DNA of 64,000 nt from Mobula hypostoma. Its lineage: Eukaryota. Below are positions 3,001-39,335 of the stretch, piece after piece. The notes under the pieces were generated by a model. The model searched no databases. It worked only from the letters and a program-made list of their open reading frames with translations, and was not told the origin of the DNA. The DNA lies in contig NW_026948139.1 in NCBI RefSeq assembly GCF_963921235.1, positions 124,001 through 188,000 of the forward strand, given 5' to 3'. How positions within the stretch are numbered: position 1 is the stretch's first letter; every line of letters starts with the position of its first letter. The translations under genes were made by a program, and so were the position numbers.

Positions 3001-5110
3001 CCTCACATCTGTGTGCCTACCTAAACCACGTCCCTATCCCTCCATCCTCCTCACATCTGTGTGCCTACCTAAACCACATCCCTATCCCTCCATCCTCCTC
3101 ACATCTGTGTGCCTACCTAAACCACGTCCCTCTCCCTCCATCCTCCTCGCATCCGTGTGCCTACCTAAACCACGTCCCTATCCCTCCATCCTCCTCACAT
3201 CCGTGTGCCTACCTAAACCACGTCCCTATCCCTCCATCCTCCTCACATCTGTGTGCCTACCTAAACCACGTCCCTATCCCTCCATCCTCCTCACATCTGT
3301 GTGCCTACCTAAACCACATCCCTATCCCTCCATCCTCCTCACATCTGTGTGCCTACCTAAACCACATCCCTATCCCTCCATCCTCCTCACATCCGTGTGC
3401 CTACCTAAACCACGTCCCTATCCCTCCATCCTCCTCACATCTGTGTGCCTACATAAACCACGTCCATATCCCTCCATCCTCCTCACATCTGTGTGCCTAC
3501 CTAAACCACATCCCTATCCCTCCATCCTCCTCACATCTGTGTGCCTACCTAAACCACGTCCCTATCCCTCCATCCTCCTCGCATCTGTGTGCCTACCTAA
3601 ACCACGTCCCTATCCCTCCATCCTCCTCACATCCGTGTGCCTACCTAAACCACGTCCCTATCCCTCCATCCTCCTCACATCCGTGTGCCTACCTAAACCA
3701 CGTCCCTATCCCTCCATCCTCCTCGCATCTGTGTGCCTACCTAAACCACGTCCCTATCCCTCCATCCTCCTCACATCTGTGTGCCTACCTAAACCACGTC
3801 CATATCCCTCCATCCTCCTCGCATCTGTGTGCCTACCTAAACCACATCCCTATCCCTCCATCCTCCTCACATCTGTGTGCCTACCTAAACCACGTCCCTA
3901 TCCCTCCATCCTCCTCACATCTGTGTGCCTACCTAAACCACGTCCCTATCCCTCCATCCTCCTCGCATCTGTGTGCCTACCTAAACCACGTCCCTATCCC
4001 TCCATCCTCCTCACATCCGTGTGCTTACCTAAACCACGTCCATATCCCTCCATCCTCCTCGCATCTGTGTGCCTACCTAAACCACATCCCTATCCCTCCA
4101 TCCTCCTCACATCTGTGTGCCTACCTAAACCACGTCCCTATCCCTCCATCCTCCTCGCATCTGTGTGCCTACCTAAACCACGTCCCTATCCCTCCATCCT
4201 CCTTGCATCTGTGTGCTTACCTAAACCACGTCCCTCTCCCTCCATCCTCCTCACATCTGTGTGCTTACCTAAACCACGTCCCTATCCCTCCATCCTCCTC
4301 ACATCCGTGTGCCTACCTAAACCACATCCCTATCCCTCCATCCTCCTCACATCTGTGTGCTTACCTAAACCACGTCCCTATCCCTCCATCCTCCTCACAT
4401 CTGTGTGCCTACCTAAACCACATCCCTATCCCTCCATCCTCCTCACATCTGTGTGCCTACATAACGACGTCCCTATCCCTCCATCCTCCTCACATCTGTG
4501 TGCCTACATAACGACGTCCCTATCCCTCCATCCTCCTCACATCTGTGTGCCTACATAACGACGTCCCTATCCCTCCATCCTCCTCACATCTGTGTGCCTA
4601 CCTAAACCACGTCCCTATCCCTCCATCCTCCTCACATCTGTGTGCCTACATAACGACGTCCCTATCCCTCCATCCTCCTCACATCTGTGTGCCTACCTAA
4701 ACCACGTCCCTATCCCTCCATCCTCCTCACATCTGTGTGCTTACCTAAACCACATCCCTATCCCTCCATCCTCCTCACATCCGTGTGCCTACCTAAACCA
4801 CATCCCTATCCCTCCATCCTCCTCACATCCGTGTGCCTACCTAAACCACATCCATATCCCTCCATCCTCCTCACATCCGTGTGCCTACCTAAACCACATC
4901 CCTATCCCTCCATCCTCCTCACATCTGTGTGCCTACCTAAACCACGTCCCTATCCCTCCATCCTCCTCACATCTGTGTGCCTACCTAAACCACGTCCCTA
5001 TCCCTCCATCCTCCTCACATCCGTGTGCCTACCTAAACCACGTCCCTCTCCCTCCATACTCCTCGCATCTGTGTGCTTACCTAAACCACATCCCTATCCC
5101 TCCATCCTCC
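1..5110. repeat. 48-bp minisatellite, about 106 copies in window (unit aaccacRtccctatccctccatcctcctcacatctgtgtgcctaccta); continues beyond the left edge
   Basis: Period of 48 seen directly (aaccac at 1, 49, 97...), with few variant positions; runs straight into a CR1 fragment at 5111. Confidence 0.98.
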
Positions 5111-5370
5111 TTGAACCTACCCCCTCTCACCTTCAATCCATGCCCTCTGGTATTAAACATCTCAACCCTGCAAAACAGATACTCTCTGTCCACTCTATCT
5201 ATGCCTCTCATAATCTTGTAAACCTCTGTCAGATCTCCCCTCAGCTTCCAGCACCCCAGAGAAAACAACCCAAGTTTAACCAGCCTCTCGTGATAGTGTA
5301 TGCCCTCTAAACCAGACAGCATCCTGGTAATCCTCTCCAAAGCCTCAACATCCTTCCTGAGGCATCCAGA
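5111..5370 (-). mobile_element. CR1 LINE 3' fragment
   Basis: Minus ORF 5077-5469 reads KDVEALERITRML...LRGDLTEVYKIMRGIDRVD...TRGHGLKVRGGRF, the typical CR1 ORF2 C-terminus. Confidence 0.85.
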
Positions 5371-6374
5371 ACTGTACACATTACTAAACATTAACAGAAC
5401 GCGGGCTAAAGTGTGACAGTTACACAGAAAGTGCAGTGCAGGGAAACAATGGGTGCAAGGTCCTAACAAGGTGGATTATAAGGCCAAGAATCTAACTTGT
5501 CGTTCCAGGGAACCATTTAATAGTGTTATAACAGCGGGCAGAAGCTGTCCTTCATCCTGGTGGTCCATGTTTTCAGGCTTTTGTATCTCCTGCCCGACGG
5601 GAGAGGCGGGAAGTGAGGATGCCAGGGTTGAGTGAGGGATTTGATTAAGCTGGCTGCTTAGCCGAGGCAGTGAGAAGCGTTGACAGAGTCCGTGGAGAAG
5701 AGGTTAGTTTCTGTGGTGCACTGAGCTGTGTCCACAACTCTGCAGCTTCCTGCAAGAGAACGCTGGTTTAAGGGAAGGGTTAGAGGATGTGGAGGGGACT
5801 TGGGGCAGAATTCTTATTACCCAGAGGGTGATCGGAATGAGGGGCTGGTGGAGGCAGGGACTCTCAAGGTTAAGATGCGTCTTGGTCAGTAGAACCAGCA
5901 CGGTTAAATACGATGGCCAGCATGGATGTGATGGGTCGAAGAGCCTGTTTCTGTGCTGTACACCCCTATGCAATTCCTGATTTCCACCAGAAATGGGAAT
6001 GGTTCCTCTATTTTCTCCCTTAAATCCCTCCGCCAAATTTCCTCCCTCCCACAGAGAAACAACCCGCAGTTCCTCATCCTGGACCATAGGTGGCGAAGTG
6101 GTCAGCCGGAGACACGGGTTCAGTCCCTGCTTTCTGCATTGTCTCTGTAGAGTTTGCACACTCCCCCGTGGGTCGTCCATGTAGCACAACATCTTTCCTT
6201 CCACCCGTCTCCCAGGAGATGGTGTGGAGAGGAGGGGGTATAGTGGAAAAGGGAGGAAGGGTAAAGGAGAGGGAGAGAAATGGAAAGATGGGCAGAAAGA
6301 GACAAAGAAGAGAGAGAAGAAGATAAAGAGAGAAACGTACAAAAGAGGGAGAGACACAGCAGGTAAAAAGCAAG

Positions 6375-6750
6375 TCATGAACACTGAGATGCTGGAAATC
6401 CAGAGCAACACACTCAAAATGCTGGAGGAACTCAGCAGGTCAGGCAGCATCTATGAAGGGGAATAAACAGTCAGTGTTTAAGATCAAGACCCTTCATCAG
6501 TACTGGACAGGAAGAGGTCAGAAGCTAGAATGTAGTGGGGGAAGAGGAGGAAGATGCCCATCTTTCCCCTCACCTGGTCTCACGTATCACCTGCTGGCTT
6601 GTTCTCCTCCATCATCCCCTCCCTCCACCTTTTTATTGCAACTTCTTCCAATCCTGATGAAGGGTCTCGGCCTGAAGCATCCTCAGTTTATTCTCCTCCA
6701 TAGATGCTGCCTGACCCGTTGAGTTCCTCCAGCAATTTGCGTGTGCTGCA
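6375..6750. mobile_element. Foldback Penelope-like (pLTR-derived) non-autonomous element, degenerate
   Basis: Inverted arms (gctggaggaactcagcaggtcaggcagcatctatg / catagatgctgcctgacccgttgagttcctccagc); degenerate ctgatgaagggtctcggcctgaag core near 6655. Confidence 0.7.
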
Positions 6751-7299
6751 GGTGAGAGGGATTGCCAGAGAGCGAGAGAAGGAGATGAAGGAATGCTAAG
6801 AGAAAGACAGATGTGACAGAGAGAGAAAGTGGGACAAAATAAGAGGAAGAGAGAGAGAGATGGATGAGAGAGAGTGTGGGACAAATAGAAAATATGTGTG
6901 AGAGGGATAGAGAGACAGAGAGGGTGGAGGGAAGAGGTGGGGTGATGAAGGACAGAGAGAGAGACCGGTGAGAGTGTGGGACAAAATAGAAAGTGTGTGA
7001 GAGAGAGGGATAGAGAGACAGAGGGGAAGAGGGGAAGATGAAGGAGAGATAGAGATAGAGAGGGAGAGTGGGACAAGCTGGATTGCATTCATCTGCAGTT
7101 GCAAGAGATGAGGAACTGCTGCGGGCTTGTTCTTGCAGAAACATGGCTCCAGGGCAACATCCCATCACCATCGACCTACAGGCCATGACACTCAGTGACT
7201 TAGACCCTATTATTTTTATTTTAAATATGCATTTTGTAATGATGTTTTTCTGTTATATTAATTATATATGCTATATGGTCTTATGCTATATGCCATATG

Positions 7300-10200
7300 G
7301 AAGCTTAAAGGTCTGAGGTGGATAAATCTCCTGGACCTGATGGAATACACCCTCAGGTTCAGAAGGAAGTAGCTGGAGAGATTGTGGAGGCATTAACGAT
7401 GATTTTTCAAGAATCAATAGATTCTGGCATTGTACCAGATGACTGGAAAACTGCAAATGTTACTCCGCTATTTAAGAAGGATGGGAGGCAGCGGAAAGGA
7501 AACTATAGACCTGTTAGCCTGACATCAGTGGTTGGGAAGTTGTTGGAATCATTTGTTAGGAATGAGATTATGGAGTACTTGGAGGCAAATGACAAAATAG
7601 GCCAAAGCCAGCATGGTTTCCTGAAAGGAAAGTCCAGCCTGACAAACCTACTGCAATTCTTTGAGGAAATTACAAGCAGGGTAGACAAAGGAGATGCAGT
7701 AGATGTGGTGTACTTGGATTTTCAGAAGGTCTTTGACAAGGTGCTGCACATGAGGCTGCTTAGCAAGATAAGAGCCCATGGAATTACAGGGAAGTTACTA
7801 GCACGGGTGAAGCATTGGCTGGTTGGCAGAAAACAGAGAGTGGGAATAAAAGGATCCTATTCTGGCTGCCGGTTACAGGTGGAGTTCCATAGGGGTCGGT
7901 GTTGGGACCGCTGCTTTTTACGATGTATGTCAATAATTTGGATTATGGTATTAATGGATTTGTGGCTATATCTGCCGATGATACAAAGATAGGTGGAGGA
8001 ACAGGTAGTGTTGAGGAAACAGGGAGCCTGCAGAGAGACTTAGATTGTTTAGGGGTATCGGCAAAGAGGTGGCAAATGAAATACAATGTTGGAAAGTGTG
8101 TGGTCATGCACTTTTGTGGAAGAAATAAACGGGCAGACTATTATTTAGATGGGGAGAGAATTCAAAATGCAGAGATGCAAAGGCACTTGGGAGTTCTTGT
8201 GCAAGGTATCCTAAAGGTTAACCTCCAGGTTGAGTTGGTTGTGAAGAAGGTGAATGCAATGTTGGCATTCATTTCTGGAGGTATAGAATATAAGAGCAGG
8301 GATGTGATGTTGAGGCTCTATAAGGCACTCATGTGACCACATTTGAAGCATTGTGTGCAATTTTGGGCTCCTTATTTTAGAAAGGATATACTGACATTGG
8401 AGAGGGTTCAGAGAAGATTCATGATACCCCCACAAATGAAAACAATTCAATTATATTCTGAAGTACCTGGTTATAAAATCAACTGCAATAAATCTGAGGC
8501 TATGCCAGTGTCAAAGTTGTGTTATTCAAATTCAGTATCTCAGTTTAATTTCAGATGGGTGCCAGTTGGAATGAAGTATCTGGGGGTCAAACTCAGTCAG
8601 AATTTGGATGAAATAATCACTTTAAATTATGACCCATTATTGAGTAGGATAAGAAATAATCTGGATAAGTGGGGGGCACTGAGACTGTCACTCTGGGGTA
8701 AAGTCAATGTAGTTAAAATGGTCACAGCACCTCAGTTTAATTATCTTTCTATGAAGCTTCCTTTAAGTATATCAGATTTGATCTACAAGCAATACAACAA
8801 AATTATCAGTAATTTTCTACGAGATAAGAAGAAGCCCAGAATTAAAATGAGTAAGATGTGTATGTCCAGGGACATGGGTGGGCTCAGTCTACCAGACGTC
8901 AGGGCATATAAATTATCCTTTGAAATGACAAAATTAGCTAAACATTGGGACAGGGCTGATATTGATTTAGATTGGGTAATTATAGAATGGAGCCTGGCTG
9001 CACAACATTCACCCCTTACATCCTTTCACAACATGTGGAAAACAAGACTAATCTAAATCCTGTACTCTTTCACTGAAGGAGTGTGTGAAGTACAATTCAT
9101 AAAGCTAGTAGAATGTCACATTTAAACCAGTTATACTCCTCGCTCTGGAATAACCCTGAGATATGCATTGGGAAAAGAATGGTGTACTGGAAGGAATGGA
9201 AGTTTAGAGGTGTAAATACAGTCGGTGATCTCTATAAGAATGGGATTTTTATGTCATATGTGGATCTGCAGAGGAAATATAACTTTGTAGATAAAGGGAA
9301 TTTTTAGAAGTATTTGCAAATAAGACATTGCGTTAGTTGCATATTCAAGAATGGTGACCCACAAAGTAACTCTTTAACTGAATACTTACGTTACCACGGT
9401 AAGTTCATAAAGCATCTGTGTTTCATAAAATATCCAAGCATTCTGTGGGTGAATCGTGTAACAATCTCAAAGCAGTGTGGCAGAAGGATCTTGGAAGCGA
9501 TATTGAAGATATCAATATATCAAGTGGTCAAATATTTTATCAAATGTGGGTAGACATATTAGGGAAGCGAGAGGGAAATTTATTCAGTGTAATGTAGTAC
9601 ACTGATATTATTGGACACCAGCTAAACTCTACAAAATGCGGACTGTTAATAATAATTTATGCTGGAAATGTAAAAATGAGGTGGGCACATATTTTCACAT
9701 GATTTGGGAGTGTTCTATGGTTCGTCCATTTTGGTGTAGAGTTCTTGATCTATTGGGGAGTTGGTCGGGTTCCACACTGCCCATGGCTTTGTCTCTTGGG
9801 TGATGGGACAATGATACCTAATGTAAACAATGATAAATTTACTATTTTAAAGGTGGGTCTCATCACAGTTGCAAGAATTATATTGCAAAACTGGAAAAAA
9901 AACGAGATGTCCCACTGTGAGGGAATGGACTGAGGAAATGATTACGATTTCATCATATGATCACGTGTTGGGAAGAATTAACAGTGAGGGGAAAAGTGCA
10001 AGATGCATGGGATCAATTTTGGTTGTATGTTAATTTAAACTTAAATTAGAACTTCTTTCTGTTTCTAAGTTTTATTTGTTTCCCTGTCAGGGGATGGCTG
10101 TGTAAATATGCTGTACTGTATCTGCTCTATGATATGCTGTGCTGCTTTGGAAAATAAGAATAAATAATAATAAAGTTTGAATTACTAAAAAAAAAGAGAA

Positions 10201-10655
10201 GATTCACGAGAATGTTTGTAAGAATGAAAGGGTTACTGTATGAGGAACGTCTGGCAGCTCTTGGGCTGTACTCCCTGGAGTTCAGGAGAATGAGGGGGGA
10301 TTCCGAATGTTAAAAGGCCTGAACAGATTAGATATGGCAAAGTTATTTCCCATGGTAGGGGATTTTAGGACAAGAGGGTATGACTTCAGGATTAAAGGAC
10401 ATCCTTTTAGAACTGAGATGTGGAGAAATTACTTTAGTCAGAGAGTGGTAAATCTGTGGAATTTGTTGCCACTAGTGGCTGTGGAGGCCAAGTCATTGGG
10501 TGTATTTAAGGCAGAGATAGATAGATTTTTGATTAGCTAGGGCATCAAAGGGTATGAGGTGAAAGCAGGGGAGTGGGGATGACTGGAAGAATTAGATCAG
10601 CCCGTGATTGAATGGTGGAGCCTACTTTTGCTCCCATACCTTATGGTCTTATATG
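7300..10655 (+). mobile_element. CR1 LINE ORF2 (reverse transcriptase) remnant, split by an L1-like insertion at 8425-10195
   Basis: KSPGPDG, NYRPVSLTSVVGK, QHGF, YLDFQK.FD and ADDTK motifs in ORFs 7318-8336; the CR1 resumes at 10196 and ends in a ttatggtctta tail. Confidence 0.92.
8425..10195 (+). mobile_element. 5'-truncated L1/Tx1-clade LINE with poly(A) tail and target-site duplication
   Basis: GYKINCNKSEAM, KYLGV, LSLWGKVNVVKM, GGLSLPD and a CWKC...HMIWEC zinc knuckle; aataaa plus A-run ending at 10195; TSD gagaagattcaYga at 8411-8424 and 10196-10209. Confidence 0.9.
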
Positions 10656-12130
10656 TTCTGAAAGAGGTGGCTGAAAGAGTTTGAAGAGGCATTAGTAAGG
10701 ATCGTTCAAGAATCACTAGATCCTGGAACAGTTCCAGAAGACTGGAAAATTGCGAATATCACTCCACTCTTCAAGAAGGGAGAAAGGCAGAAGAAAGGAA
10801 ATTATAGGCCAGCTAGTCTGACCTAAGTGGTTAGGAAGATGTTGGAGTCAATTGTTAAGGATGTGGTTTCAGGGTCATTGAAGGCACCTGATAGAATAGG
10901 TCATAGTCAGCGTGGTTTCCTCAAGGGAAAATCTTGCCTGACAAATCTGTTGGACAAACAGGATAGACAAATGATGCTGTGTACTTGGATTTTCAGAAGG
11001 CCTTTGTCAAGGTGCCACATCTGAGGCTGCTTAAGTTAAGAGCCTTTGGTTTTACAGGAAAGATACTAGCATGGGTGAAACATTGGCTGATTGCAGGAGG
11101 CAAGGGATGGGATTAAAGGAAGCCTTTTCTGCTTGGCTGTTGATGACTAGTAGCGTTTCACAGAGGTTTGTGTTGGAACTGCTTCCATTTGCATTATATG
11201 TCAATGACTTGCACGAGGCAATTGATGGCTTTGTGGCCAAGTTTGCAGACAATGCAAAGATACGTGCAGGGGCAGGTCGTCTTCAGGAAGTAGAACAGCC
11301 ACAGAAGGGCAGATTAGGAGAATGGGCAAAGAAATGGCTGATGGAATACAGTGTTGGGAAGTGTATGGTCATGCACTTTGGCAGAAGAAATGAAAGGGTT
11401 GAGTATTTTAAATGGAGAGAACATTAAAAAATCTGAGGTACAAACGGACTTGGGAGTCCTTGTGCAGGATTTCCTGAAGGTTACTTTGCAGGTTGAGTCT
11501 GTGATGAAGAAGGCAAATGCAACGTTTGGCATTAATTTCAAAAGGACTAGAATATAAAAGCTAGGATGTAATGTTGAGACTGTATAGAGCACTGGCGAGG
11601 CCTCACTTGGAGTATTGTAAGAAGTTTATGTAAAAAAAGGATATGCTGAAACTGGAAAGGGTTCAAAGGAGGTTCGCGAAAATGATTCCAGGATTGAAAG
11701 GCTTGTCATATGAGGGTTTTTCTACTCACAGGAATTCAGAAGAATGAAGGGTAGCCTCATTGAAACCTATGGAGTGGTGAAAGGCCTTAACAGAGTTAAT
11801 GTGGAGAGGATGTTCCCTGTAGTGGGCGAGTATATGACCAAAGAATAGAGGGGTGTCCTTTTTAGAACGGAGATGAAGAGGAATTTCTTCAGCCAGAGAG
11901 TGCTGTATCTGTGGAATTCGTTGTCACAGGTGGCTGTGGAGGCCAAGTCGTTGTGTACACGTACAGAAAGCCCAAGCTGATAGATTCTTGATCGGTCAGG
12001 GCATGAAGGGGTAGTGGGAGAAGGCAGGAGAGTGGGGCCGAGAGGGAAAATGGATCGGCCATGATGAAATGGCAGAACAGACTGGATGGCCCAAATGGCC
12101 TGATTGTGCTGCCATATCGTATGGTCTAAT
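10656..12130 (+). mobile_element. Second CR1 LINE remnant, head-to-tail with the first
   Basis: Degenerate RT motifs (NYRPASLT, KFADNAK) and a tatcgtatggtctaatg tail. Confidence 0.85.
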
Positions 12131-12449
12131 GCTGAGTGTGACTGTCGGTGCGGTGTTTGCAGGCTAGCTGTAAGCACGGGTACGGTGAAATATCAATTAA
12201 ACGAACAAAATAGAAAGGGGGGGACGAAAAGCAAGTGAGAAACGGGAGGATGTTTGAGCCAGAAAACAGAGAAAGGGGGGCTGGGAGAGGGGGCTAGAGT
12301 GGGGAGAGAGAAGGAGGTGGGGGGAGAGGAGGGTGTGCGGCCAACCCTGCTGTAAGAGACGGCGTGGAGATTGGGCGCCGTCCTCTCTCCCTCGATGCGT
12401 TGATGCGAAGATGCTGGTGGGGGTAGGGGGAGTGGCGCCCCGACCTTAC

Positions 12450-12942
12450 CTGGGGGTGCTGGGGGTCCCCGACGCTGCGTTGGAAGAGTTCCCGCAGCCT
12501 CTCCGTGTCCAGGGCCACGGGTTGCAGCCCGTCCCAGATGGTGGCGGGTCCGAAGCGGCTGAACTTGGGCTGGGCGGGCAGCTCGGCGATGCCCTTCCAG
12601 TGCAGCCTGCGGGTGCCCCTGCCTCCGCCGGTCCTGGGGGTCGCGCCGGCGAGGGGAGGGGGGGGAGGGAGAGGGGGAGGGGGCGGGGGTCCGTTCCCCT
12701 GCGTCGGGCACGGAGTGGCGCCGTCGGACCGGGGGTGTCCTTCGCCCTCCTCTTCCTCCTCCCGCAGGTCGCTAAAGTCCAGGGTCTTCAACCGCAGCTC
12801 CCTGGCGCTCCCCAGCAGGACGTCCCACAGCTGTTCCAAGCCTCTCCTAGCCTCGGGCACCCCATCTCCGTCCTGGGACTCGGCAGCCCCCGTCTTCATC
12901 CTGGCCAGGATCGGGAATGGAGTGCTGGGGTGTTGACAGAGG
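12450..12942 (-). CDS. Exon of an FHOD-family formin (FHOD1/FHOD3-like): DFSDL motif, short FH1 and start of FH2
   Basis: WDVLLGSARELRLKTLDFSDLREEE resembles FHOD3 WDQLMANPRELRIQDMDFTDLGEED; polyproline FH1 follows; then TRRLHWK...IWDGLQPVALDTERLRELF resembles the FHOD FH2 entry. Acceptor ccttactccag (phase 2) and donor CAG|gtaagg (phase 0). Confidence 0.85.
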
Positions 12943-14539
12943 CTGGAGTAAGGTGGAGGGCGAGGAGCCTATTGGGCGGGGAAATGGTGGCGGGATGGGG
13001 GGGAGGCGCGGTGGTTCTCGCCGCCGGTTTACATCAGTCCGATGCGTTTTCATCCTCTCCCCTGGGGTTCCCAGAGACTGCTAGCCCTCCTCCCTGTGAT
13101 TCGGGAAGCGCGGGTGGTCTCGGAGGTGGTTAAGGTTTCCTGTCTGCCGGGGCACACCCGCTCCGTCTCCATCACTAGCGTGTGTGAGACCGGGGACAGG
13201 GCTGGTCACTCACACATCTTCACCACCCACAACCCCCCTCCCACACACACACACAGACACACACTCCCATACACACACATACCTACACACTCACACTCAC
13301 TCTCTCACACACACACTCACACTCCCACACACACACTCACATATACACTCACACNNNNNNNNNNNNNNNNNNNNNNNNNNNNNNNNNNNNNNNNNNNNNN
13401 NNNNNNNNNNNNNNNNNNNNNNNNNNNNNNNNNNNNNNNNNNNNNNNNNNNNNNNNNNNNNNNNNNNNNNNNNNNNNNNNNNNNNNNNNNNNNNNNNNNN
13501 NNNNNNNNNNNNNNNNNNNNNNNNNNNNNNNNNNNNNNNNNNNNNNNNNNNNNNNNNNNNNNNNNNNNNNNNNNNNNNNNNNNNNNNNNNNNNNNNNNNN
13601 NNNNNNNNNNNNNNNNNNNNNNNNNCCCACACACACAGAGAGACTCACACACACACTCACACTCTCACACACACACTCACACTCTCACTCACANNNNNNN
13701 NNNNNNNNNNNNNNNNNNNNNNNNNNNNNNNNNNNNNNNNNNNNNNNNNNNNNNNNNNNNNNNNNNNNNNNNNNNNNNNNNNNNNNNNNNNNNNNNNNNN
13801 NNNNNNNNNNNNNNNNNNNNNNNNNNNNNNNNNNNNNNNNNNNNNNNNNNNNNNNNNNNNNNNNNNNNNNNNNNNNNNNNNNNNNNNNNNNNNNNNNNNN
13901 NNNNNNNNNNNNNNNNNNNNNNNNNNNNNNNNNNNNNNNNNNNNNNNNNNNNNNNNNNNNNNNNNNNNNNNNNNNNNNNNNNNNNNNNNNNNNNNNNNNN
14001 NCACTCACATTACCTCTACCCGTGCGTCTTTCTATCTCTCTATGCCTCTCTCCTTCTTAATCCTTGTGTGTTCTCGTTTTCCTCTCTCTCCTTCACCATT
14101 TCTCTATCCAGCTCTGTGTCCCTGCCCCTTTCTCGTCACTCTCTGCACGTTTCTCTCTCTCTATTTGCCCCTCTCTCTCCATCTACCTTTCCACTTTTCT
14201 ACCTAGTTTTCCTCTCTTCTCTCTCTCTCCTTCCCCTCTTTGTTTCTCCATCTCCCGCTCTCTCTCTCCATATCTCATCCTCTCCCCCTCACGCTACCTC
14301 CGCTCATCGCCCCTCACTCTATCTCGCCCTCTCGCTCATCTCCCCTTCCTCCCACCTTTCCCGTGTCTCCCTTCTCTCCTCCTTTTATCCTTATCTGTCC
14401 TCCCTCCCTTTGTCTGCTCTCTCCCCTCACTTCCAGTCCCCCCCTCTCTCTCTGTTTCTCACACTCCCCACCGTCGCCTCTCCTTCTCTCTCCCTTTGCT
14501 CATCAGCCTGTTCCTCCAGAAACATTGCCTCCATCCCAC

Positions 14540-14582
14540 CTGCCTTCTCTCTCCGCAGAGCCAGGGAGGTCGGGTGGGGGTG
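14540..14582 (-). CDS. Candidate small upstream exon of the FHOD-like gene
   Basis: Acceptor ctaccttactgcccag and donor CAG|gtggga; a phase 1 to phase 2 reading (PPDLPGSAEREG) chains onto the 12942 exon. No homology support. Confidence 0.25.
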
Positions 14583-15629
14583 CTGGGCAGTAAGGTAGAC
14601 AGTGACTGACCGGGTTGTGGGGGGGAGTGAGGGGGAGGGGAGATAGGAGAACGGAGAAGGGCGAAAAGGAGGGGAGGGGAAATGGAGGAACGAGCAGTGG
14701 GGAGAGAGAGGAATGGAGATGGAAAGGGACGGGACAGAATGAGAGGCATCCGGGATAGCCAGTGAGGCGTAGGGATGAGGAGGGCAGGGAAGGTGGGAGT
14801 GAGAGGGTTAAAGTTGAGGTGATTTCAGCAGCTGGGAGAAGGTCACACTTTGGCACAGAACACTGATAAGCAGTGAGTAAACAGGAGGGAACAATAATTA
14901 CACCATCCATCACAGATAATGGCCTAAATTACTCTCACGGCAGTAAACACACCCTCTCAAGGGACGGGACAGAGAGAGGCCGGGACACGAAAACAGACTC
15001 GCTCCTTCCCTCCCTCTCACTCGTTCCATCTTCCTCTCTCTCTGTCTGTATCGTCCTCTCCAACTCTCTCCCTGAGTTCCTCTCTTATCTCCCTTTCCCT
15101 CCCTCGCTCCCTGTCTTTTCTTCATGTATCCCTCCCCGCCTCTTCATCTCTACTCCTCCCCCGTTCATTCTATCCCTCTCCCGTTCATTCTCCCTCTCCC
15201 TCTCCCCGTCATACTCACTCTGTCATACTCTCCCTGTCCGTCTCTCTCTGTATCCCTCTCATTGTCTCTCTCACACTCCCCCATTCATTGTTAGTCCCCA
15301 CCTCCCCCTCCCTCTCTCACTCTCTCACACACACATACACACACACACACATTTTCTGCTTCACCCTCCCTGTCCCTCTCTCACACCGCACCTCTGTACC
15401 CTGCCTTTCCCTCTACCTTCCCCACTCTCTCCTCCACACACAGGGCTGTGGACTGATCGCCCGTGACTGAGTCCAGTCCTCGGCTGGAGTTATATCACGA
15501 AGTAAATCAGTACTATCTGCCTGTTCTAAACACGGGCAACCCGCTCTTACGCGCCCGCTGCCCGTTTCACCGCTGGCGATTGGGGCAGCAATGAACATCC
15601 TCCATCTCATGGCTTCCTTCACCCTGTCA

Positions 15630-15925
15630 GTAGCTCCCTCGCGGTTTTCACTGCTGTCAGTCAGGCAAGTCCCGGGCGGAGACTCGGGAAGGATTCTTCA
15701 CTGCTGTTTCCACAACAGTTTTGTTTCACCAGTCGGGGTTGTTAGCCCGGAGCTGAACCCCCGAACCTGGAAGACCCGTGGACCGCTCTTACTCTGGCCT
15801 CTGCCCTTTGACCTGTTTGCCACGGGTGACCCCAGCAAGATCCAAAGCACAAAGCCCTGACTCCAGCCAACATAGCTCTCCGGGTTATTGAGACACGCGA
15901 GCCCTCAAAGACTATGACAAGTTTG
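15630..15925 (-). mobile_element. RTE/BovB-like LINE 5'UTR-derived fragment
   Basis: Minus strand cttgtcatag...gggctcgcgtgtctcaataacccggagagctatg...ggtcacccgtggcaaacaggtc resembles recalled RTE 5'UTRs. Confidence 0.5.
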
Positions 15926-16085
15926 TGGTCCCCTTGCAGGGCAGAACCCGCTAACATTTGCTTTATTGTTGGAAAATGCTAACCCAGATTTAAAATGGAG
16001 CCCAAGTTCTCCTACGTTAATGGGACACCCCACCTCGGCAGGGCCTGCTAATTCCCTGGCTAAACCTCTGCTATGCTTCTCGTAC

Positions 16086-16136
16086 CTGTCCTGCCTCCTC
16101 TTGAACCCCTTCTTCCTCCGAGCCCCGGGTCGGTGG
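16086..16136 (-). CDS. Candidate 51-nt exon of the FHOD-like gene
   Basis: Acceptor cccccgtgatctccacag, donor CAG|gtacga, purine-rich and frame-preserving. No homology support. Confidence 0.3.
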
Positions 16137-16894
16137 CTGTGGAGATCACGGGGGTCGGGGGTGGGGGCCTTCCTGAATGGGAATCTTTTCCTAAAACTGT
16201 GACCTCGTCACCGACAAGAAGCTGATCCTGTTGAAGTTCACTTTTTCGGGGTGTGAATCTGGCCCGGAGCTGAGAGCTGGCAGATTCGTGTCCCCCCACT
16301 CCTACACACCGTAGCGGCCCGATCTCTCTCTCTCCCACCCCGGCTCCTGGCCATCCCCGCCGGCACTCATTGTCCCTGGACGCTGACTCTCTGTGTCCCT
16401 GTCTGAGGGGTATCATATCCCTGCGTGTGTTGGGTGTGGGTGAAAGTGGGGAGCACCAGTGCCCGCAGATGCCCCCCCCCCCACCTCCACCATCGCCACT
16501 GGCAAAAGCTCTCTTTCACTATGCCGGACGCCGGCTCACCGTTCTCAGGGGGATTAATGTATCCGGATTACATTCCTCCCGGCGTTATGCAGGGCATTTC
16601 AGAATCACGGGATCAGTGCTGCAGTGAAGGGATTCATCTCCTTCCCCCCGCCCCCCGAACCCGTTCTCCTCGCCCCCATCCTCCCACATCCCCAGATCCC
16701 CCTAGGGAGGGACCGGAGCCCTTAGGGGAAACCCCACGAGGGTCACAGAGAGACTGTGGCGAGCAGCTTCAAGTTCATGTGACAATGTCTATCCGGGTCC
16801 AGTACATGGATACAACCTTGAGCAAGGCGCCCCTTCCTCTCTACTTTCGTACAGCTTGATCTCCACCGCCATCAGATCCCGGAATCTCCAAATC

Positions 16895-17205
16895 CTCAAC
16901 CCTCCTTCTCCCTTTCCCCCTTTCTCTTCCCCTCATCCTCTCTCACTCCTCTCCCTCACTCTCCTCTCTTTTTCTCCCCTTCCCCTCTCTTCCTCTCCCC
17001 TCTGTCTTCCCCTCTCCCCCTCCCTTTCTCCTCTCCTCTCTCTCTTCCCCTCTCCCTCCCTCCCTCCCTCTCTTTCTCCCCCTCCCTCTCTCCCTTTCTT
17101 TCCCTCTCCTCTCTGCCTTTTCCTTCTCTCCCTCTCTTTTTATCTCCCTCTCCGCCCTCTCTCTCTCTTTTCCCCTTTCTCTCTCTCTTCCCCCTCTCCC
17201 TCTCA
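16895..17205. repeat. Polypyrimidine (CT-rich) low-complexity tract; similar tracts at about 6760-7075 (GA), 14020-14500 and 15000-15440; CA-rich tract at 13210-13693
   Basis: Seen directly in the sequence. Confidence 0.9.
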
Positions 17206-17927
17206 ATCTTGCTGTTTATTTATTTATAAACTAGTACTGTTTATTTTGCTCGTTGGCAAATTGCATATAATTAATATTAATCTAAGTTTACGTTACCATG
17301 TTTGTCCTCTTAATTTGCTGTTCATATAAACCTAATCTTCTCGACATTCTTACCCTGATCGTGGTATGCTGCAGCAACAATAAACTTAGAAGGCGCTGTT
17401 GGAAGTGTCCCTGCTCATTACATCACGGCCTGGTATGCGCAGAGAGCGGCTGAATTTGCCCCGGTATGTCATGGGCATGCCCCGTGATGTACTGGGCAGA
17501 ATCTCCTGCCGGTGGAGGGCAGATACCACCCCGCCCCCTCCCCCTCCATCTGTAGTATCTACAAAGGGGCATGGTCTCATTGTAGATCCCCACCCCCGGG
17601 CCGCGCCATCTTCTCACTGCCACCATCGGGCAGGAGATACAGAAGCCTGAAGTCCCATTCCGCCAGGTTCAGCTACCCCCCCCGCCCCACCACTGCAACC
17701 ATTCGGTTCCTGAACCAGCCAGCACAACCCGAATCACTTCCTCAGCACAGCCAGACTTTGCACTAAAATGGACAGCTTTCTGTTCTAATTGTGTACTTCT
17801 TTTGTAAAAAAAAAGTGTATTATTGACGCAACCATGAGGAGATCTGCAGATGCTGTAATTTCAAGCAACACACATCAAAGTTGCTGGTGAACGCAGCAGG
17901 CCAGGCAGCATCTCTAGGAAGAGGTGC

Positions 17928-17963
17928 AGTCGACGTTTCGGGCCGAGACCCTTCGTCAGGACG
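17928..17963 (-). ncRNA. Minimal type I hammerhead ribozyme motif (left arm of the Penelope-like element)
   Basis: Minus strand: cGUC-CUGACGA-a-GGGU cucg GCCC-GAAAC-GUC^GAC. Confidence 0.65.
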
Positions 17964-18958
17964 AACTGAAGGAAGAGTGAGGAAGGGATTTGAAAGTTGG
18001 AGGGGGAGGGCGAGATCCAAAATGATAGGAGAAGACAGGAGGGGGAGGGATGGAGCCGAGAGCTGGACAGGTGATAGGCAAAAGGGATATGAGAGGATCA
18101 GGAGACAGGAGGCCCAGGGAGAAAGACAAGGGGGGGGGAATACCCAGAGGATGGGCAAGGGGTATAGTCAGAGGGACAGAGGGAGAAAAAGGAGAGTGAG
18201 AGAAAGAATGCGTGTATATAAATAAATAACGGATGGGGTACGAGGGAGAGGTGGGGCCTTAGCGGAAGTTAGAGAAGTCAATGTTCATGCCATCAGGTTG
18301 GAGGCTACCCAGACGGAATATAAGGTGTTGTTCCTCCAACCTGAGTGTGGCTTCAACTTGACAGTAAAGGAGGCCGTGGATAGACACATCAGAATGGGAA
18401 TGGGCCTTCTATACATTGGCGAGACCCGACACAGACTGGGAGATCGTTTTGCTGAACACCTACGCTCGTCCGCCAGAGAAAGCAGGATCTCCCAGTGGCC
18501 ACACATTTTAATTGCACGTCCCATTCCCATTCTGACATGTCTATCCACGGCCTCCTCTACTGTAAAGATGAAGCCACACTCAGGTTGGAGGAACAACACC
18601 TTATATTCCGTCTGGGTAGCCTCCAACCTGATGGCGTGAACATTGACTTCTCTAACTTCCGCTAATGCCCCACCTCCCCCGCGTACCCCATCCGTTATTT
18701 ATTTATATACACACATTCTTTCTCTCACTCTCCTTTTTCTCCTTCTGTCCCTCTGACTATACCCCTTGCCCATCCTCTGGGTATTTCCCCCCCCCCTTTC
18801 CTTCTCCCCGGGCCTCCTGTCCCATGATCCTCTCATATCCTCTTTTGCCAATCACCTGTCCAGCTCTTGGCTCCATCCCTCCCCCTCCTGTCTTCTCCTA
18901 TCATTTTGGATCTCCCCCTCCCCCTCCCACTTTCAAATCTCTTACTCTTCCTTCAGTT

Positions 18959-18994
18959 AGTCCTGACGAAGGGTCTCGGCCTGAAACGTCGACT
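18959..18994 (+). ncRNA. Minimal type I hammerhead ribozyme motif (right arm)
   Basis: AGUC-CUGACGA-stem II (agggtctcggcct)-GAAAC-GUC^GACU. Stem I is AGUC/GACU, a palindromic ACGU replaces helix III, and the predicted cut is after 18990. Confidence 0.75.
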
Positions 18995-19249
18995 GTACCT
19001 CTTCCTAGAGATGCTGCCTGGCCTGCTGTGTTCACCAGCAACTTTGATGTGTGCATTATTGATGCCTGTGTCCTTCTGAATGCTCTTTATCTGATGCCTT
19101 GCGCCTGTGATGTTGCTAAGGTGTTTTTTCTTGTACGGACAGAAAATGCTGGGGGGTCCACCTGTACGTTGCTTTAGATTTCCATCATCTTAAGACTTTC
19201 TCAAGTTTTTTTTTCTGAACGAACTGAAGTTTGAAGTGGGACCGGCTCG

Positions 19250-20160
19250 GGAGAGCTCTGTTTCCGGGGTGCACAACTCTGAGTCTGTGACCTCCGTCCA
19301 TCGTCCGCTGCGTGCGGAGCCCACACCTGCCCTTACCGAGGGGTCGGCGGTGGAAAGGGCCTGCAGCTTCAAGTTCCTGCTGTCAACATCACGGGGTGGG
19401 GGGTGGCGGGGATCAGTCCTGGGCCCAACACCCGGCACTCGCGAAGAAGGCGATCCAGAATTCGGTTCGTCCTGCAGACTTCTGCGGACGCCCGGTGGGG
19501 AGGATTCCGGCCGGTTACGCCGCCGCCCGGGATGAAAGCTCCAGGCCCGGGATCATGAGGGCTGATGACTCCGCCAGCTCCGACACGGGCAGCAGCCGCC
19601 ACTCTGTCGAGGACATCTTCCCAATGCGCTGCCTCGAGAAGGCGCCGTCCGTCACTGAATCACCCAGGACGTGCCCCCTTCTCATCCCTATCATCCGGGA
19701 GGGGCTGCAGGAGCCTGAAGACCCCCATCACCCAGGACGTGCCCCCTTCTCATCCCTATCATCCGGGAGGGGCTGCAGGAGCCTGAAGACCCCCATCACC
19801 CAGGACGTGCCCCCTTCTCATCCCTATCATCCGGGAGGGGCTGCAGGAGCCTGAAGACCCCCATCACCCAGGACGTGCCCCCTTCTCATCCCTATCATCC
19901 GGGAGGGGCTGCAGGAGCCTGAAGACCCCCATCACCCAGGACGTGCCCCCTTCTCATCCCTATCATCCGGGAGGGGCTGCAGGAGCCTGAAGACCCCCAT
20001 CACCCAGGACGTGCCCCCTTCTCATCCCTATCATCCGGGAGGGGCTGCAGGAGCCTGAAGACCTACACTAAATGTTTTAGGGACAGTTTCGTCCCCTCGC
20101 CATCAGATTTCTGAAGGTTCAATAAACACTACCTGTCTCCGCTGTTTATTTTGTATGTTA
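19250..20160 (+). mobile_element. GC-shifted Rex/Babar-like LINE 3' remnant
   Basis: VERACSFKFLL and VEDIFPMRCLEKAPS motifs; homologous to 59380-59800. Confidence 0.7.
19661..20064. repeat. 68-bp minisatellite, 6 essentially identical copies
   Basis: cacccaggacgtgcc... recurs at 19661, 19729, 19797, 19865, 19933 and 20001. Confidence 0.97.
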
Positions 20161-20256
20161 CTCTGGCTCTGTATTTGGGCTGGGGGGGCGCGAAGGGGTA
20201 GCTCTGGGGTGGGGGAGGAGACCTCTCGCTCCCTCTAATCTCACACCAGCACAACT

Positions 20257-20309
20257 ATGAATAATTATCCGGACTTTGGACTGCTTACGACGGGATCAAA
20301 GTCCAGGAT
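20257..20309 (+). promoter_or_regulatory. Putative CIDEB liver-type promoter: two inverted HNF4 DR1-like sites plus a weak HNF1-like site
   Basis: ggatCAAAGTCCA at 20293-20305 (plus strand), agtcCAAAGTCCg at 20270-20282 (minus strand) and atgaataattatc at 20257-20269; 105-150 bp upstream of the ATG. Confidence 0.6.
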
Positions 20310-20410
20310 CTCGCTATCCTCCCTCTGCTCGCGGACGCCCTGCACTGATTTGATCTTCCAGAGACCTGACCTGCGTTTCCTGTCGAAACCCGGCGGCTGG
20401 AAGGAGCACC

Positions 20411-20526
20411 ATGTCTCTCTGTGGGCCGCGTCCCGACGAAGGCTCGGTATCCAGGCGTGCCAGCGAGGATCAGGCCGGCTTCCTGGGGTCCCGGGGTTAC
20501 ATATCCTCGGCCTCCTCGCTGATCAG
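20411..20526 (+). CDS. CIDEB: CIDEB coding exon 1
   Basis: gcaccATG; ...GYISSASSLIR ends AG|gttagt and joins A-TCA-GTG to give LIRSV (human LLRSV). Confidence 0.75.
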
Positions 20527-23500
20527 GTTAGTCCGGGAGGGAGGCGGAGCAACCCCCCACCTCCCAGCCGCCGTGAAACCGCCGTGTAATTTCCCACCCT
20601 GATCCAATCGCCCTCTCCCCTCGGCGACCCCTAACCCCGAATATTTCTGGTATCCGGACATCCCCAGCGCTCTGGGAGGGGTGAGGTGAGGAGATTCCGC
20701 GCTCCTCCCACACAAGGAATCCCTCCTCATCTCCGTCTTAACGGGACGGAGACTGTTCCCCCTCCCCCCTTGGTTCTGGATTCTCCCACCAAGAGAACCA
20801 TCCTCTCAGCATCTCCCCCGTGGCGTCCCTCTCCCCGCGAAATCCCCCCTCCCTCATCATCTCCACCTTTCAATAAGATCACCTCTCCTTACCCTGAGTC
20901 CCAACGAGAAAACCCAACCTGCCCGTTCCTTCCCGGTAAGGGAACCCTTTCCCCTGAAACGACCCAGCGACCCCCTCCGCATCGCTCTGCAATGAATACG
21001 GGACCCCCCACCATTCCTGATGTCACCCAACCCCCACCCCCGTCCTATCAAACCAGGACTGACCCCCTGCCTCAGCCTCACCCCCTGCACTGACCCTGTC
21101 TTCCCTTCACGTCCAGAACTCACCGATCCCCCTCCCTCTGTGCTGGGGGGTAGAATTCCAGAGATTTACTTTCCTGGGGGCGGAAGGGAGGGCAGGGGAT
21201 AGAAAGCTCTCTCTGAACAGCTGACCTTCTATTCTGGGACGGTGACCCACCACCCCCTCCCAGCTCTGGGACATCCCAGTCAGGGGGAAAATGTGCCCCG
21301 TCACGCCCGGGAGAGTTTTCCCAAACTCTCGTTGCTCTCGTTCTCCCAAACCCCAGAGGTCCCATCTGCTTAATCCCTCCTCAGAGGAAAATCCACGCCC
21401 ACCACACCCGTTCCAGGGACGGATGCGATGAACCTTCCCCCCCCCCCGACCCCCGATGTCACACACCTCGCATTCTTAGAGTCACGAGACCAGTGCTGTG
21501 CACAATGTTCCTGGGGTGGTCTCGCTGGGACTCGTCACTGGATCAGGATGTCTTGTGTTGCTTTCTCTGGAGCGTCTCAGGCCGAGGGGAGACCCGATTG
21601 AAGGTTATAAAATTGCGGCACAGATAGGGCAGACAGTCAGAATCTTTCTTCCCCAGGGCGCAAATGTCAAATACCAGGTGATATGGAGAATAGCTTAAAG
21701 GAGATTTGGAAGGCAGGGTTTTTTTTTCTGCACGGAGAGAGGGGGATGTCCGAGACGGGCTGCCGGGGGGGGGGGTGGGGTGGAAGCAGATGACGTCACG
21801 ATGCTTTTAGACAGACGGGTGAACAGAATGTAGATCACGTGCAGGCAGATGGCATCAGTTGGGTTGGCCCACCGGGTCTCGCTGATCTGATGAAGCTGAT
21901 GGCAGCTAATCCTATTTACCTGGGTAGGGTCCATATTCAGAATCAGGTTCATTATCACTGAATAGAACCTGCCCTTCGGACCACTGCGTTGCGCTGACCT
22001 GCTCCAAGACCAATCTAACACTTCCTTCTCACTTAACCCTCCACTTCTCTATCATCCATTTCATATCGTGACATTGTTACTGTAAGCGACACACATAAAT
22101 ATACCCAGTGACCATGTTACAGGCACACCTGTACACCTGCTCGTTAATGCAAATATCCAATCAGCCAATCATGTGGCAGCAACTCGAAGCATAAAAGCAT
22201 GCGGACTTGGTCAAGAGGTTCAGCTGTTGTTCAGACCAAACATCAGAATGGGGAAGAAATAAGTGATTTTGACTGTGGAATGATTGTTGGTGCCAGATGG
22301 GGTGGTTTGAGTATCTCGAAGACTGCTGATCACCGTATTCCTCGACTTTTCCATCCATGCTCACTGTTCAAATGGGAACGTGCGTTCCAAAAGAGAGAGT
22401 GTCACAGATTTAATCCTCGTCGCCACTGCTGCAATTAAAGAGCATTTATCGTGACCAGTGCTGCTTGTCACCTGGAAAACCATGAACACGTTCACAAGGT
22501 CGGAATGAGTAGGTTAGACGTTAATTGATAGACGGTCAAGCCCGCGGGACCGACCAATCCCGTGATGTCACATGACAGACCAATTAAACACTCACCCGGT
22601 GGACAGGACAATTTTCACACACGATACTCTCCAGGTTTTACAGAGAATGGTGCGAGCACAACATTCAGTGAAGGAACATTTTTTTCTGTGGGCGAAAACG
22701 CCTTGTTAATGAGAGAGGTCAGACTCGAAGGCGACAGTGACTCAAATACACACGTTTTGCAACAGCGGTGTGCAGAGAGCATCTCTGAAAGCACAACACG
22801 TCGAACCTTGAAGTGGACGGGTACAGCGGCTAGTTTATTCGGTGCAGTCCTAACGATAGTGTTCGAAACAAACTCGGACAGCTCCCCCTTTCCGCAGGCT
22901 TCGTAGACAGAATCAGAGTCATTTTATCGCTGGTATGTGTGGAGAAATTGTAGTAGAACGCAAGGCATTAAGCTACAATGATAAGTGAATGAATGGATGA
23001 CTAGCTAGGTAGAGCGACAGAGAGATAGTGAGCTAATGTTCATGGGTTTGGAAGTCTGATGACCGTGGGGAAGAAGCTCTCCCTCAAACACTGAGTGCGG
23101 GTCTTCAGGCTCCTGTACCTCCTCCCTGAAGGTAGCAATGGGAAGAGTCTCGCTATTGTATCTACTCCCCCGACAGCCCGCCGAGGGTGTTGCTGGAACA
23201 GAGGAACGTGGTTGTAAGGGGAGCTTGCACAGGCTGAGATTGTTCTCACTGGAACGTGGGAAGCTGAGGGGTGACCTGATGGAATTATAAGGGGGGGGGG
23301 TAAATAGGGTTCCTTAGGGTTGTTACAGCCAGAGGTGGGGGTGGTAACAGGGATAAGCTCCCACTACCCGTTAAATGCTCTCAAATAGCCCCCGACAGCC
23401 GCCCGGCACCCGGCCTTGCCGCAACACACAGGAAACGCTGCAGCAACTCAGCAGGCCAGGCAGCATCGACGAAAAAAGTACAGTCGCCGTTTCGGGCCGA

Positions 23501-25932: not shown

Positions 25933-25965
<33 letters not shown>

Positions 25966-38699: not shown

Positions 38700-39335
38700 C
38701 TGGCCTTCATAACTAGGGGAATTGAGTATAAGAGCAAAGAGGTCCTTCTGCAGTTGTACAGGGCCCTGGTGAGACCACACCTGCAGTACCATGTGCAGTT
38801 TTGGTCTCCAAATTTGAGGAAGGACATTCTTGCTATTGAGGGAGTGCAGCGTAGGTTCACGAGGTTAATTCCCGGGATGGCAGGACTGTCACATGTCAAA
38901 AGATTGGAGCGACTGGGCTTGTATACTCTGGAATTTAGAAGGCTGAGAGGGGATCTTATTGAAACCTTTAAGATTATTAAGGGATTGGACACGCTGGAGG
39001 CAGGAAGCATGTTCCCGCTGATGGGTGAGTCCAGAACCGGAGGTCACAGTTTAAGAATAAGGGGTAGGCCATTTAGAACGGAGTTGAGGAAAAACTTTTT
39101 CACCCAGAGAGTGGTGGATATATGGAATGCTCTGCCCCAGAAGGCTGTGGAGGCCAAGTCTCTGGATGCTTTCAAGAAAGAGATGGATAGAGCTCTTAAA
39201 GATAGCGGAATCAAAGGTTATGGGGATAAGGCAGCAACTGGATACTGATTGTGGATGATCAGCCATGATCACAGTGAACGGTGGTGCTGGCTCGAAGGGC
39301 CGAATGGCCCACTCCTGCACCTATTGTCTACTGTC
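38700..39335 (+). mobile_element. Young CR1 3' fragment nested in an older minus-strand CR1 (about 38570-39690)
   Basis: ORF 38754-39248 YRALVRPHLQY...FKKEMDRAL; ctattgtctactgtc tail; the flanks read as antisense CR1. Confidence 0.88.

Follow-up and report, generated by a model that had tools for sequence, protein, structure and literature searches.

The minus-strand segment 12450-12899 of the DNA analyzed here is best explained as the first coding exon of a devil ray (Mobula hypostoma) formin gene that represents a third gene of the FHOD subtype in jawed vertebrates. We put the probability of this reading at roughly 0.85. The DNA, which we call the window, is a stretch of 64,000 nucleotides, and all positions refer to it. 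The devil ray gene is represented in it by exon 1 alone, and the architecture of the protein is taken from orthologues, hereafter the short family. Judging from the stingray orthologue, the protein would be about 555-570 amino acids long and would consist of the FHOD acidic motif, a short FH1, a complete FH2 domain and a short tail.

Published accounts recognize fewer genes of this subtype. A 2014 review of FHOD proteins credits vertebrates with "at least 2" genes, fhod1 and fhod3, and states that functions "were split between 2 genes" (PMC4601495). A 2025 zebrafish preprint gives two FHOD genes for most vertebrates and three for teleosts (fhod1, fhod3a and fhod3b), and in the accessible portion of a 2016 formin phylogeny no further FHOD gene is named. 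In our literature search for an existing name of the short paralogue, the names returned proved to be FMNL aliases or to denote the FHOD3L isoform, and no paper was found that joins FHOD, teleost, tetrapod and phylogeny. The gene appears to be present in databases as automatic models without being recognized as a distinct paralogue. A third conserved FHOD paralogue, if confirmed, changes the count of vertebrate FHOD genes.

An FHOD-type first coding exon

Read on the minus strand, the segment is a single open frame of 150 codons that extends from an ATG to a splice donor (Table 1). The initial annotation, made from the sequence alone, had noticed here an FHOD-type motif, an FH1 and the entry of an FH2 domain, and had assigned the gene to the FHOD subtype; all of these readings held up. 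The LEQLWDVLL segment occupies residues 21-29, and ELRLKTLDFSDL with its acidic run occupies residues 34-51. This FHOD-subtype arrangement before FH1 (W..L, then L.I/L..LDF[ST]DL and an acidic run) is common to the window exon, insect, hagfish, FHOD1, FHOD3 and short-family proteins. The lone polyproline track, PPPPPPLPPPPP, lies at residues 71-82, and the FH2 entry follows 13 residues later, at residues 96-140, with the pattern RRLHW...FG..IW...P..LD...L..LF, including LRELF. In full-length orthologues, Pfam calls FH2 from the same point onward, and the window exon keeps 100% of the invariant columns of the short-family alignment. When the exon alone was submitted, Pfam made no FH2 call, just about 45 FH2 residues lying within the exon, and Pfam and PDB sequence searches gave proline-rich noise only. 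Open reading frames on the plus strand that overlap the exon are by-products of high G+C content.

Table 1. Features of the window around the formin exon and the neighboring genes
Feature	Position	Strand	Basis or comment
Intron 1, at least 12.4 kb, runs off the window; 48-bp satellite and LINE fragments	1..12447	-	tblastn, repeat detection
Splice donor GT, context CAG/GTAAGG, phase 0	12448..12449	-	Sequence read
First coding exon, short FHOD-type formin	12450..12899	-	Open frame from ATG to donor; 88% identity to stingray P0167
FH2 domain start (lasso region)	12480..12614	-	tblastn with FHOD1, FHOD3 and short-family proteins
FH1, one polyproline track PPPPPPLPPPPP	12654..12689	-	Translation
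FHOD pre-FH1 motif: short helix LEQLWDVLL, then ELRLKTLDFSDL and acidic run	12747..12839	-	Conserved across FHOD proteins
Start codon, protein begins MKT...	12897..12899	-	MK aligned across orthologues
Upstream region up to divergent CIDE gene	12900..25465	.	N gaps 13355-13625 and 13694-14001
CIDE-N exons of neighbor, head-to-head with formin	25466..26659	+	Pfam CIDE-N, E=6e-23
NOP9 gene, PUF_NOP9 exons	43839..57082	-	Four ORF pieces with Pfam PF22493 matches

At the core of the pre-FH1 motif is D-F-(S/T)-D-L with acidic flanks (12765-12779, residues 41-45), which is conserved from insects to rays in all FHOD proteins compared. LC3-interacting motifs have the form aromatic-x-x-aliphatic in an acidic setting, and it may be speculated that this core fits their general shape.

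The position of the start codon bears on the kind of transcript to which the exon belongs. MK occupies the aligned position in rays, sharks, coelacanth, bichir and teleosts, the lungfish model having 7 further residues ahead of it. The segment had originally been bounded at 12450-12942. These bounds do contain the exon, but the upper one coincides with a possible acceptor AG at 12942, and the orthologue-conserved ATG is at 12899. Such an acceptor would be expected if the segment were an alternative first exon internal to a canonical FHOD gene, with GBD and FH3 exons farther upstream that gene models have missed. Possible acceptor AGs indeed occur 25 and 43 bases 5' of the ATG, the frame above the ATG is open for 24 codons before the nearest in-frame stop, and the sequence immediately upstream of the exon is interrupted by two N gaps. 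However, tblastn across the 64-kb window, including the 51 kb upstream of the exon, found no match to a GBD or FH3 exon, and a divergent CIDE gene begins at a distance of about 12.5 kb, with a similar arrangement in the stingray. Moreover, the retrieved orthologue models begin at this MK or close to it. An assembled teleost transcript of 2,419 nt has an intron-free ORF of 561 codons and an AATAAA near its 3' end, and its 544-nt leader is interrupted by stops in every frame, including one that precedes the ATG by 2 codons. The short form thus exists as mRNA and is not a clipped gene model, and we regard an alternative first exon of a canonical gene as very unlikely.

Family membership and distribution

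In a pairwise comparison, the exon matches residues 1-157 of the stingray (Hypanus sabinus) protein P0167 with 88% identity (E=7e-76). P0167 is a RefSeq model of 555 amino acids named "FH1/FH2 domain-containing protein 3-like". The sole difference in length is an in-frame run of 7 prolines in FH1, which is longer in the stingray, and the exon-2 residues of the stingray protein begin exactly where the window exon stops. Exon 1 has a like extent in the genes of pufferfish (L001) and paddlefish (L002), in which it contains the start codon and FH1 and ends a short distance past the conserved LF in the FH2 entry. Because of the stingray identity, the shared junction and this common extent, the window segment is exon 1 of the devil ray orthologue.

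When used as a phmmer query against 1.84 billion representative proteins, the exon gave 63 matches, 20 of them at E<=1e-10, which is far beyond chance. In the best full-length matches, which are proteins of about 500-610 amino acids, the exon aligns at the extreme N-terminus and FH2 is the sole Pfam domain. The weaker matches include full-length FHOD proteins of psyllids, hagfish and a catfish, and these carry FH3, plus GBD in complete models, upstream of the aligned part. All of the named fragments among the exon-1 matches are from teleosts.

The distribution of the family was established from two profile searches and one single-sequence search, among the best 120 matches listed. The rays are represented by Hypanus and Narcine, and the sharks by Heterodontus, two Scyliorhinus species, Hemiscyllium and Mustelus. 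Further members occur in coelacanth, African lungfish, bichirs, paddlefish and gar, and teleosts contribute more than 100 clusters, including a zebrafish gene with RefSeq models of 489 and 549 amino acids. The initial annotation had proposed a paralogue retained in cartilaginous fish; retention is not special to them, since coelacanth, lungfish and ray-finned fishes have the gene too. At NCBI, the teleost and gar members are labeled "FHOD1", and those of sharks, rays, coelacanth and lungfish "FHOD3-like".

Species with several paralogues are informative about the status of the short gene. In both Amphiprion ocellaris and Anabas testudineus, the short gene occurs together with an FHOD3b and with an FHOD1 that has GBD and FH3. 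Because each of these species carries all three genes, the short family is an additional gene and not a renamed orthologue. Origin as a retrocopy is ruled out because the paddlefish gene has at least 8 coding exons.

Among the stingray models, isoform X1 (P0286) has a 15-residue insert in a conserved FH2 helix. The insert is absent from other family members, including P0167, and is probably the product of a retained intron or of mis-splicing in the model.

Phylogenetic separation from FHOD1 and FHOD3

The stingray protein scores 455-494 bits against FHOD1 and FHOD3, as against 40-72 bits for the other formins that we tried (mDia1, DAAM1, FMNL3, INF2, Bni1 and Cdc12). Within the subtype, we inferred a maximum-likelihood tree of FH2 domains under LG+C20 by PMSF, with 60 sequences and 369 columns. 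It is restricted to FHOD proteins, other formin subtypes being left out, and it is without elasmobranch FHOD1 and FHOD3, mammalian FHOD1, amphioxus, tunicate and lamprey.

In this tree, the short family forms its own clade with support of 100/100, and the branching within it follows the species tree: rays and sharks, then coelacanth and lungfish, then ray-finned fishes. The short family lies outside the FHOD1 clade (100/97), which holds the chimaera Callorhinchus, frog, birds and teleosts, and outside the FHOD3 clade (100/97). FHOD proteins of arthropods (insect and mite) fall outside all three vertebrate clades (100/99). The hagfish sequence and a second one, which we take as cyclostome from its tree position, group with FHOD3 and not with the short family. 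An extra FHOD paralogue had been proposed for this locus, along with an FH2 phylogeny as the means of checking it. The proposal is borne out by the three gnathostome clades (starred in the tree) and by the occurrence of all three genes in single teleost species, and the short family nests in neither of the known clades.

The alternative that must be weighed against an additional gene is that the exon belongs to the ray's own FHOD1 (or FHOD3) orthologue, which has diverged rapidly. The database names of the family would fit such an explanation, no elasmobranch FHOD1 or FHOD3 is among the proteins that we retrieved, and the maximum-likelihood tree places the short clade as sister to FHOD1 at 96/92. 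However, this alternative conflicts with the full support for a short clade that excludes canonical FHOD1 and FHOD3, and with an FHOD1 clade that already contains a cartilaginous fish, Callorhinchus. When the short family was forced to group with teleost FHOD1, the arrangement cost 20 log-likelihood units and was rejected by the AU test (p=0.013). The presence of all three genes in Amphiprion and Anabas also argues against a rapidly diverged orthologue, and we assign that alternative only a minimal probability, favoring a separate third gene.

Where this third clade attaches is less constrained than its separateness. AU tests rejected neither a position outside FHOD1 plus FHOD3 (p=0.24) nor one beside FHOD3 as a whole (p=0.13). 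Mean FH2 identity within the short family is 60%, compared with 80% for FHOD1 and 87% for FHOD3, and a shark and a teleost member of the short family are 49% identical in FH2, compared with 79% for chimaera and teleost FHOD1. Because the short clade is long-branched and fast-evolving, its placement may be open to long-branch effects.

One sequence in the tree draws attention to database naming. Alligator mississippiensis P0215, which is called "FHOD1 isoform A" at its source, falls inside the FHOD3 clade, and this name looks wrong. P0295, called "isoform B", is on the same contig as P0215.

Domain content and predicted structure

Canonical FHOD proteins have regulatory elements on both sides of the FH1-FH2 core. 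In Pfam scans, GBD (PF18382) was in none of the short-family proteins scanned. FH3/DID (PF24959), which FHOD1, FHOD3, hagfish and insect proteins carry, was likewise found in none of them. On the C-terminal side, the canonical FHOD tail contains two elements C-terminal to FH2. The first is an HENMK motif with a small basic cluster; the DAD core DDA.DEIMDR.VKS and the basic stretch RKRSR.NRKSLRRTLKSG together make up the second. Comparison of orthologue tails indicates that the short family keeps just the first element (HE.MKE.L..PE...LPR.R.K) and then ends; the DAD core and RKRSR.NRKSLRRTLKSG are absent from these tails and are present only in FHOD1, FHOD3 and the cyclostome protein. Both partners of the FH3-DAD lock are thus gone, since the orthologues have no FH3 at the front and no DAD core in the tail.

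In the orthologues, the FH2 domain itself is complete. Pfam detects it (PF02181) in their full-length proteins with E=1e-59 to 5e-77. The hallmarks KRSN.INI.L, GNFLNG and VKDT are conserved, and 95 conserved columns are common with FHOD1 and FHOD3. The stingray protein as modeled by AlphaFold has a pLDDT that exceeds 90 for most of residues 165-485, and the model matches the crystal structures of the mDia1 and DAAM1 FH2 domains with target TM-scores up to 0.88. The pre-FH1 motif of this orthologue is modeled, with low confidence, as a short helix at residues 19-30. On the strength of its conservation and the predicted fold, the short-family FH2 looks functional.

Locus and neighborhood

The gene is incomplete in the window, in which tblastn found no match to orthologue residues 158 onward. 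This raises the alternative that the gene is dead in the devil ray, with exon 1 surviving as a well-preserved remnant of a locus that has decayed or been rearranged. In addition to the lack of exons 2 onward within the 12.4 kb to the left, where there is satellite and LINE debris, no devil ray protein is among the matches listed in our protein searches, and the residue after DFSDL, a nearly invariant tryptophan, is R in the devil ray. However, the stingray has also lost this tryptophan (it has Q) and yet has a complete model of 555-570 amino acids. Because the stingray gene model is complete, the change is read as one of the ray lineage and not as decay. The remainder of the exon also speaks for an active gene: the ATG and the frame are intact, the donor fits the consensus, and the sequence retains 88% identity to the stingray with no change in length other than the in-frame proline run. 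Long introns are normal for the gene, orthologues of which span 55-75 kb in sharks and stingray. We consider it unlikely that the locus is a relic.

Facing the formin head-to-head is a CIDE gene on the opposite strand, with CIDE-N exons at about 25.47 and 26.52 kb, and NOP9 lies beyond it (Table 1). The stingray has the same head-to-head CIDE neighbor, with about 9.3 kb between the genes. In other lineages, a C2H2 zinc-finger gene is downstream of the short formin in both sharks, and the pufferfish gene is flanked by KLHL33 on one side and by a gene for a 318-residue RRM protein on the other. In one eel-relative gene model, KLHL33 is fused to the formin. No CIDE homologue was found in the flanks of the gar, paddlefish and pufferfish genes, and the CIDE neighbor is established for rays only.

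We take CIDEB, NOP9 and KLHL33 to be on human 14q11-q12, FHOD1 on 16q22 and FHOD3 on chromosome 18, and we further assume that the NFATC and CBLN families link human chromosomes 14, 16, 18 and 20 as paralogous regions. The neighbors of the short gene, which are CIDE and NOP9 in rays and KLHL33 in pufferfish, suggest a link with the region of human chromosome 14. Origin of the short gene by whole-genome duplication is therefore plausible, in that the presumed paralogy among these four chromosomes fits it.

Apparent absence from tetrapods

The gene had been proposed to be absent from mammals. That much agrees with our searches, but the apparent loss is wider: in ranked searches with profiles and with a single sequence, no tetrapod orthologue is among the best 120 matches listed, and the loss would be on the tetrapod stem and not just in mammals. 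A profile built from non-teleost members alone gave 704-946 bits for the known non-teleost orthologues. Below about 700 bits, teleost orthologues are mixed with tetrapod proteins named FHOD1 or FHOD3, and these tetrapod proteins are 650-1,060 amino acids long, many with FH3 and/or GBD. Because lungfish and coelacanth have the gene, its loss on the tetrapod stem is the simplest reading.

Comparison with known formins and possible function

The short family shares with FHOD1 an FH2 domain of about 52% identity with the same hallmark motifs, the pre-FH1 motif W..L...L.I/L..LDF(S/T)DL with its acidic run, and the first tail motif HENMK, in keeping with the sister position of the two clades in the maximum-likelihood tree. 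Unlike FHOD1, it has no GBD, FH3/DID, DAD core or basic ROCK-site tail. Complete FHOD1 models that we retrieved are about 1,000-1,400 amino acids long (human FHOD1 has 1,164), whereas short-family proteins have about 560. The FH2 domain of the short family also evolves markedly faster than that of FHOD1, and its gene has CIDE and NOP9 or KLHL33 as neighbors. Likeness to FHOD3 (FHOD3a and FHOD3b in teleosts) is similar in degree, with about 52% identity in FH2 once more and both the pre-FH1 and the HE.MK motif in common. However, FHOD3 is a separate (starred) clade, and the short family lacks its regulatory N-terminus, DAD core and basic ROCK-site tail.

These differences concern the parts through which FHOD1 is controlled. 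FHOD1 is activated by removal of the DAD or by mutation of FH3, and ROCK phosphorylation of its tail releases it (PMC4601495). The short protein resembles the constitutively active FHOD1 constructs (DAD-deleted and V228E; PMC4601495) in being without parts that form the FH3-DAD lock. In contrast with these constructs, it is natural and conserved and is without both partners of the lock.

By analogy with other FHOD proteins, the short protein may be expected to dimerize through FH2, to act on actin barbed ends and to bundle filaments, and its single proline track would feed profilin-actin to FH2. Since it possesses neither half of the DID-DAD lock, it would presumably be neither autoinhibited nor released by ROCK in the manner of FHOD1 and FHOD3. 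With no such lock, control would probably be exerted by expression level or by partners. A natural FHOD protein without the GBD-FH3 and DAD control parts would help in studying how the FHOD core behaves by itself.

The history of the gene can be sketched in the same conditional terms. It would have arisen by duplication before the split of cartilaginous and bony fishes, most likely in the vertebrate genome doublings, and an early loss of the 5' exons and the tail would have been followed by a later loss of the gene on the tetrapod stem. With moderate confidence, we favor an account in which there were three ancestral FHOD genes in jawed vertebrates. In this account, the third shed both halves of the DID-DAD lock early; cartilaginous fishes, coelacanth, lungfish and ray-finned fishes have retained it for over 400 million years, and stem tetrapods lost it. 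The same account includes an unrecognized fourth zebrafish fhod gene, which could compensate in fhod1, fhod3a and fhod3b mutants. A 2025 zebrafish study found no single fhod gene essential, and the short-family zebrafish gene was not considered in the fhod mutant work.

A precedent for such a history is PHCF, the "lost human formin" (Pruyne 2016, PMC5047451), which was likewise kept in fishes, is missing from a large vertebrate group, and was overlooked with model mammals lacking the gene. Unlike the short FHOD gene, which is beside CIDE and NOP9 and is in no tetrapod match listed, PHCF has PH domains and is still found in birds and marsupials (PMC5047451). If our account is true, the short FHOD gene is the second formin, after PHCF, to have been lost from a large vertebrate group. 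PHCF was also considered as an identity for the window gene and was rejected, because it is of another formin subtype and lies between MC3R and CBLN4 (PMC5047451).

Repeats in the window

Within intron 1 of the formin, positions 1-5111 consist of a 48-bp satellite (106.6 copies, 96% matches) that generates long spurious ORFs in several frames. ORF fragments resembling LINE reverse transcriptase occur within formin intron 1 and in the vicinity of the CIDE gene, at 7318-9056, 10300-11600, 32383-33318 and 38754-39248.

At 18285-18639 there is a near-perfect palindrome of about 340 bp, recognized because ORFs of both strands begin with MEATQTEYKVLFLQPECGF. Related pieces (LVNAAGQAASLGRG...) recur near 17.9, 18.9, 50.3 and 62.0 kb, so that the element may be a dispersed SINE-like repeat. 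A 68-bp unit is repeated six times at 19659-20063 with 100% identity, which points to a very young array.

Long degenerate repeat arrays occupy 29000-37600, between the CIDE gene and NOP9, and contain proline-rich and histidine-rich ORFs on both strands. A further tandem repeat, at 53594-54495, lies in a NOP9 intron and produces long repetitive ORFs (CTHCARARAGTS...).
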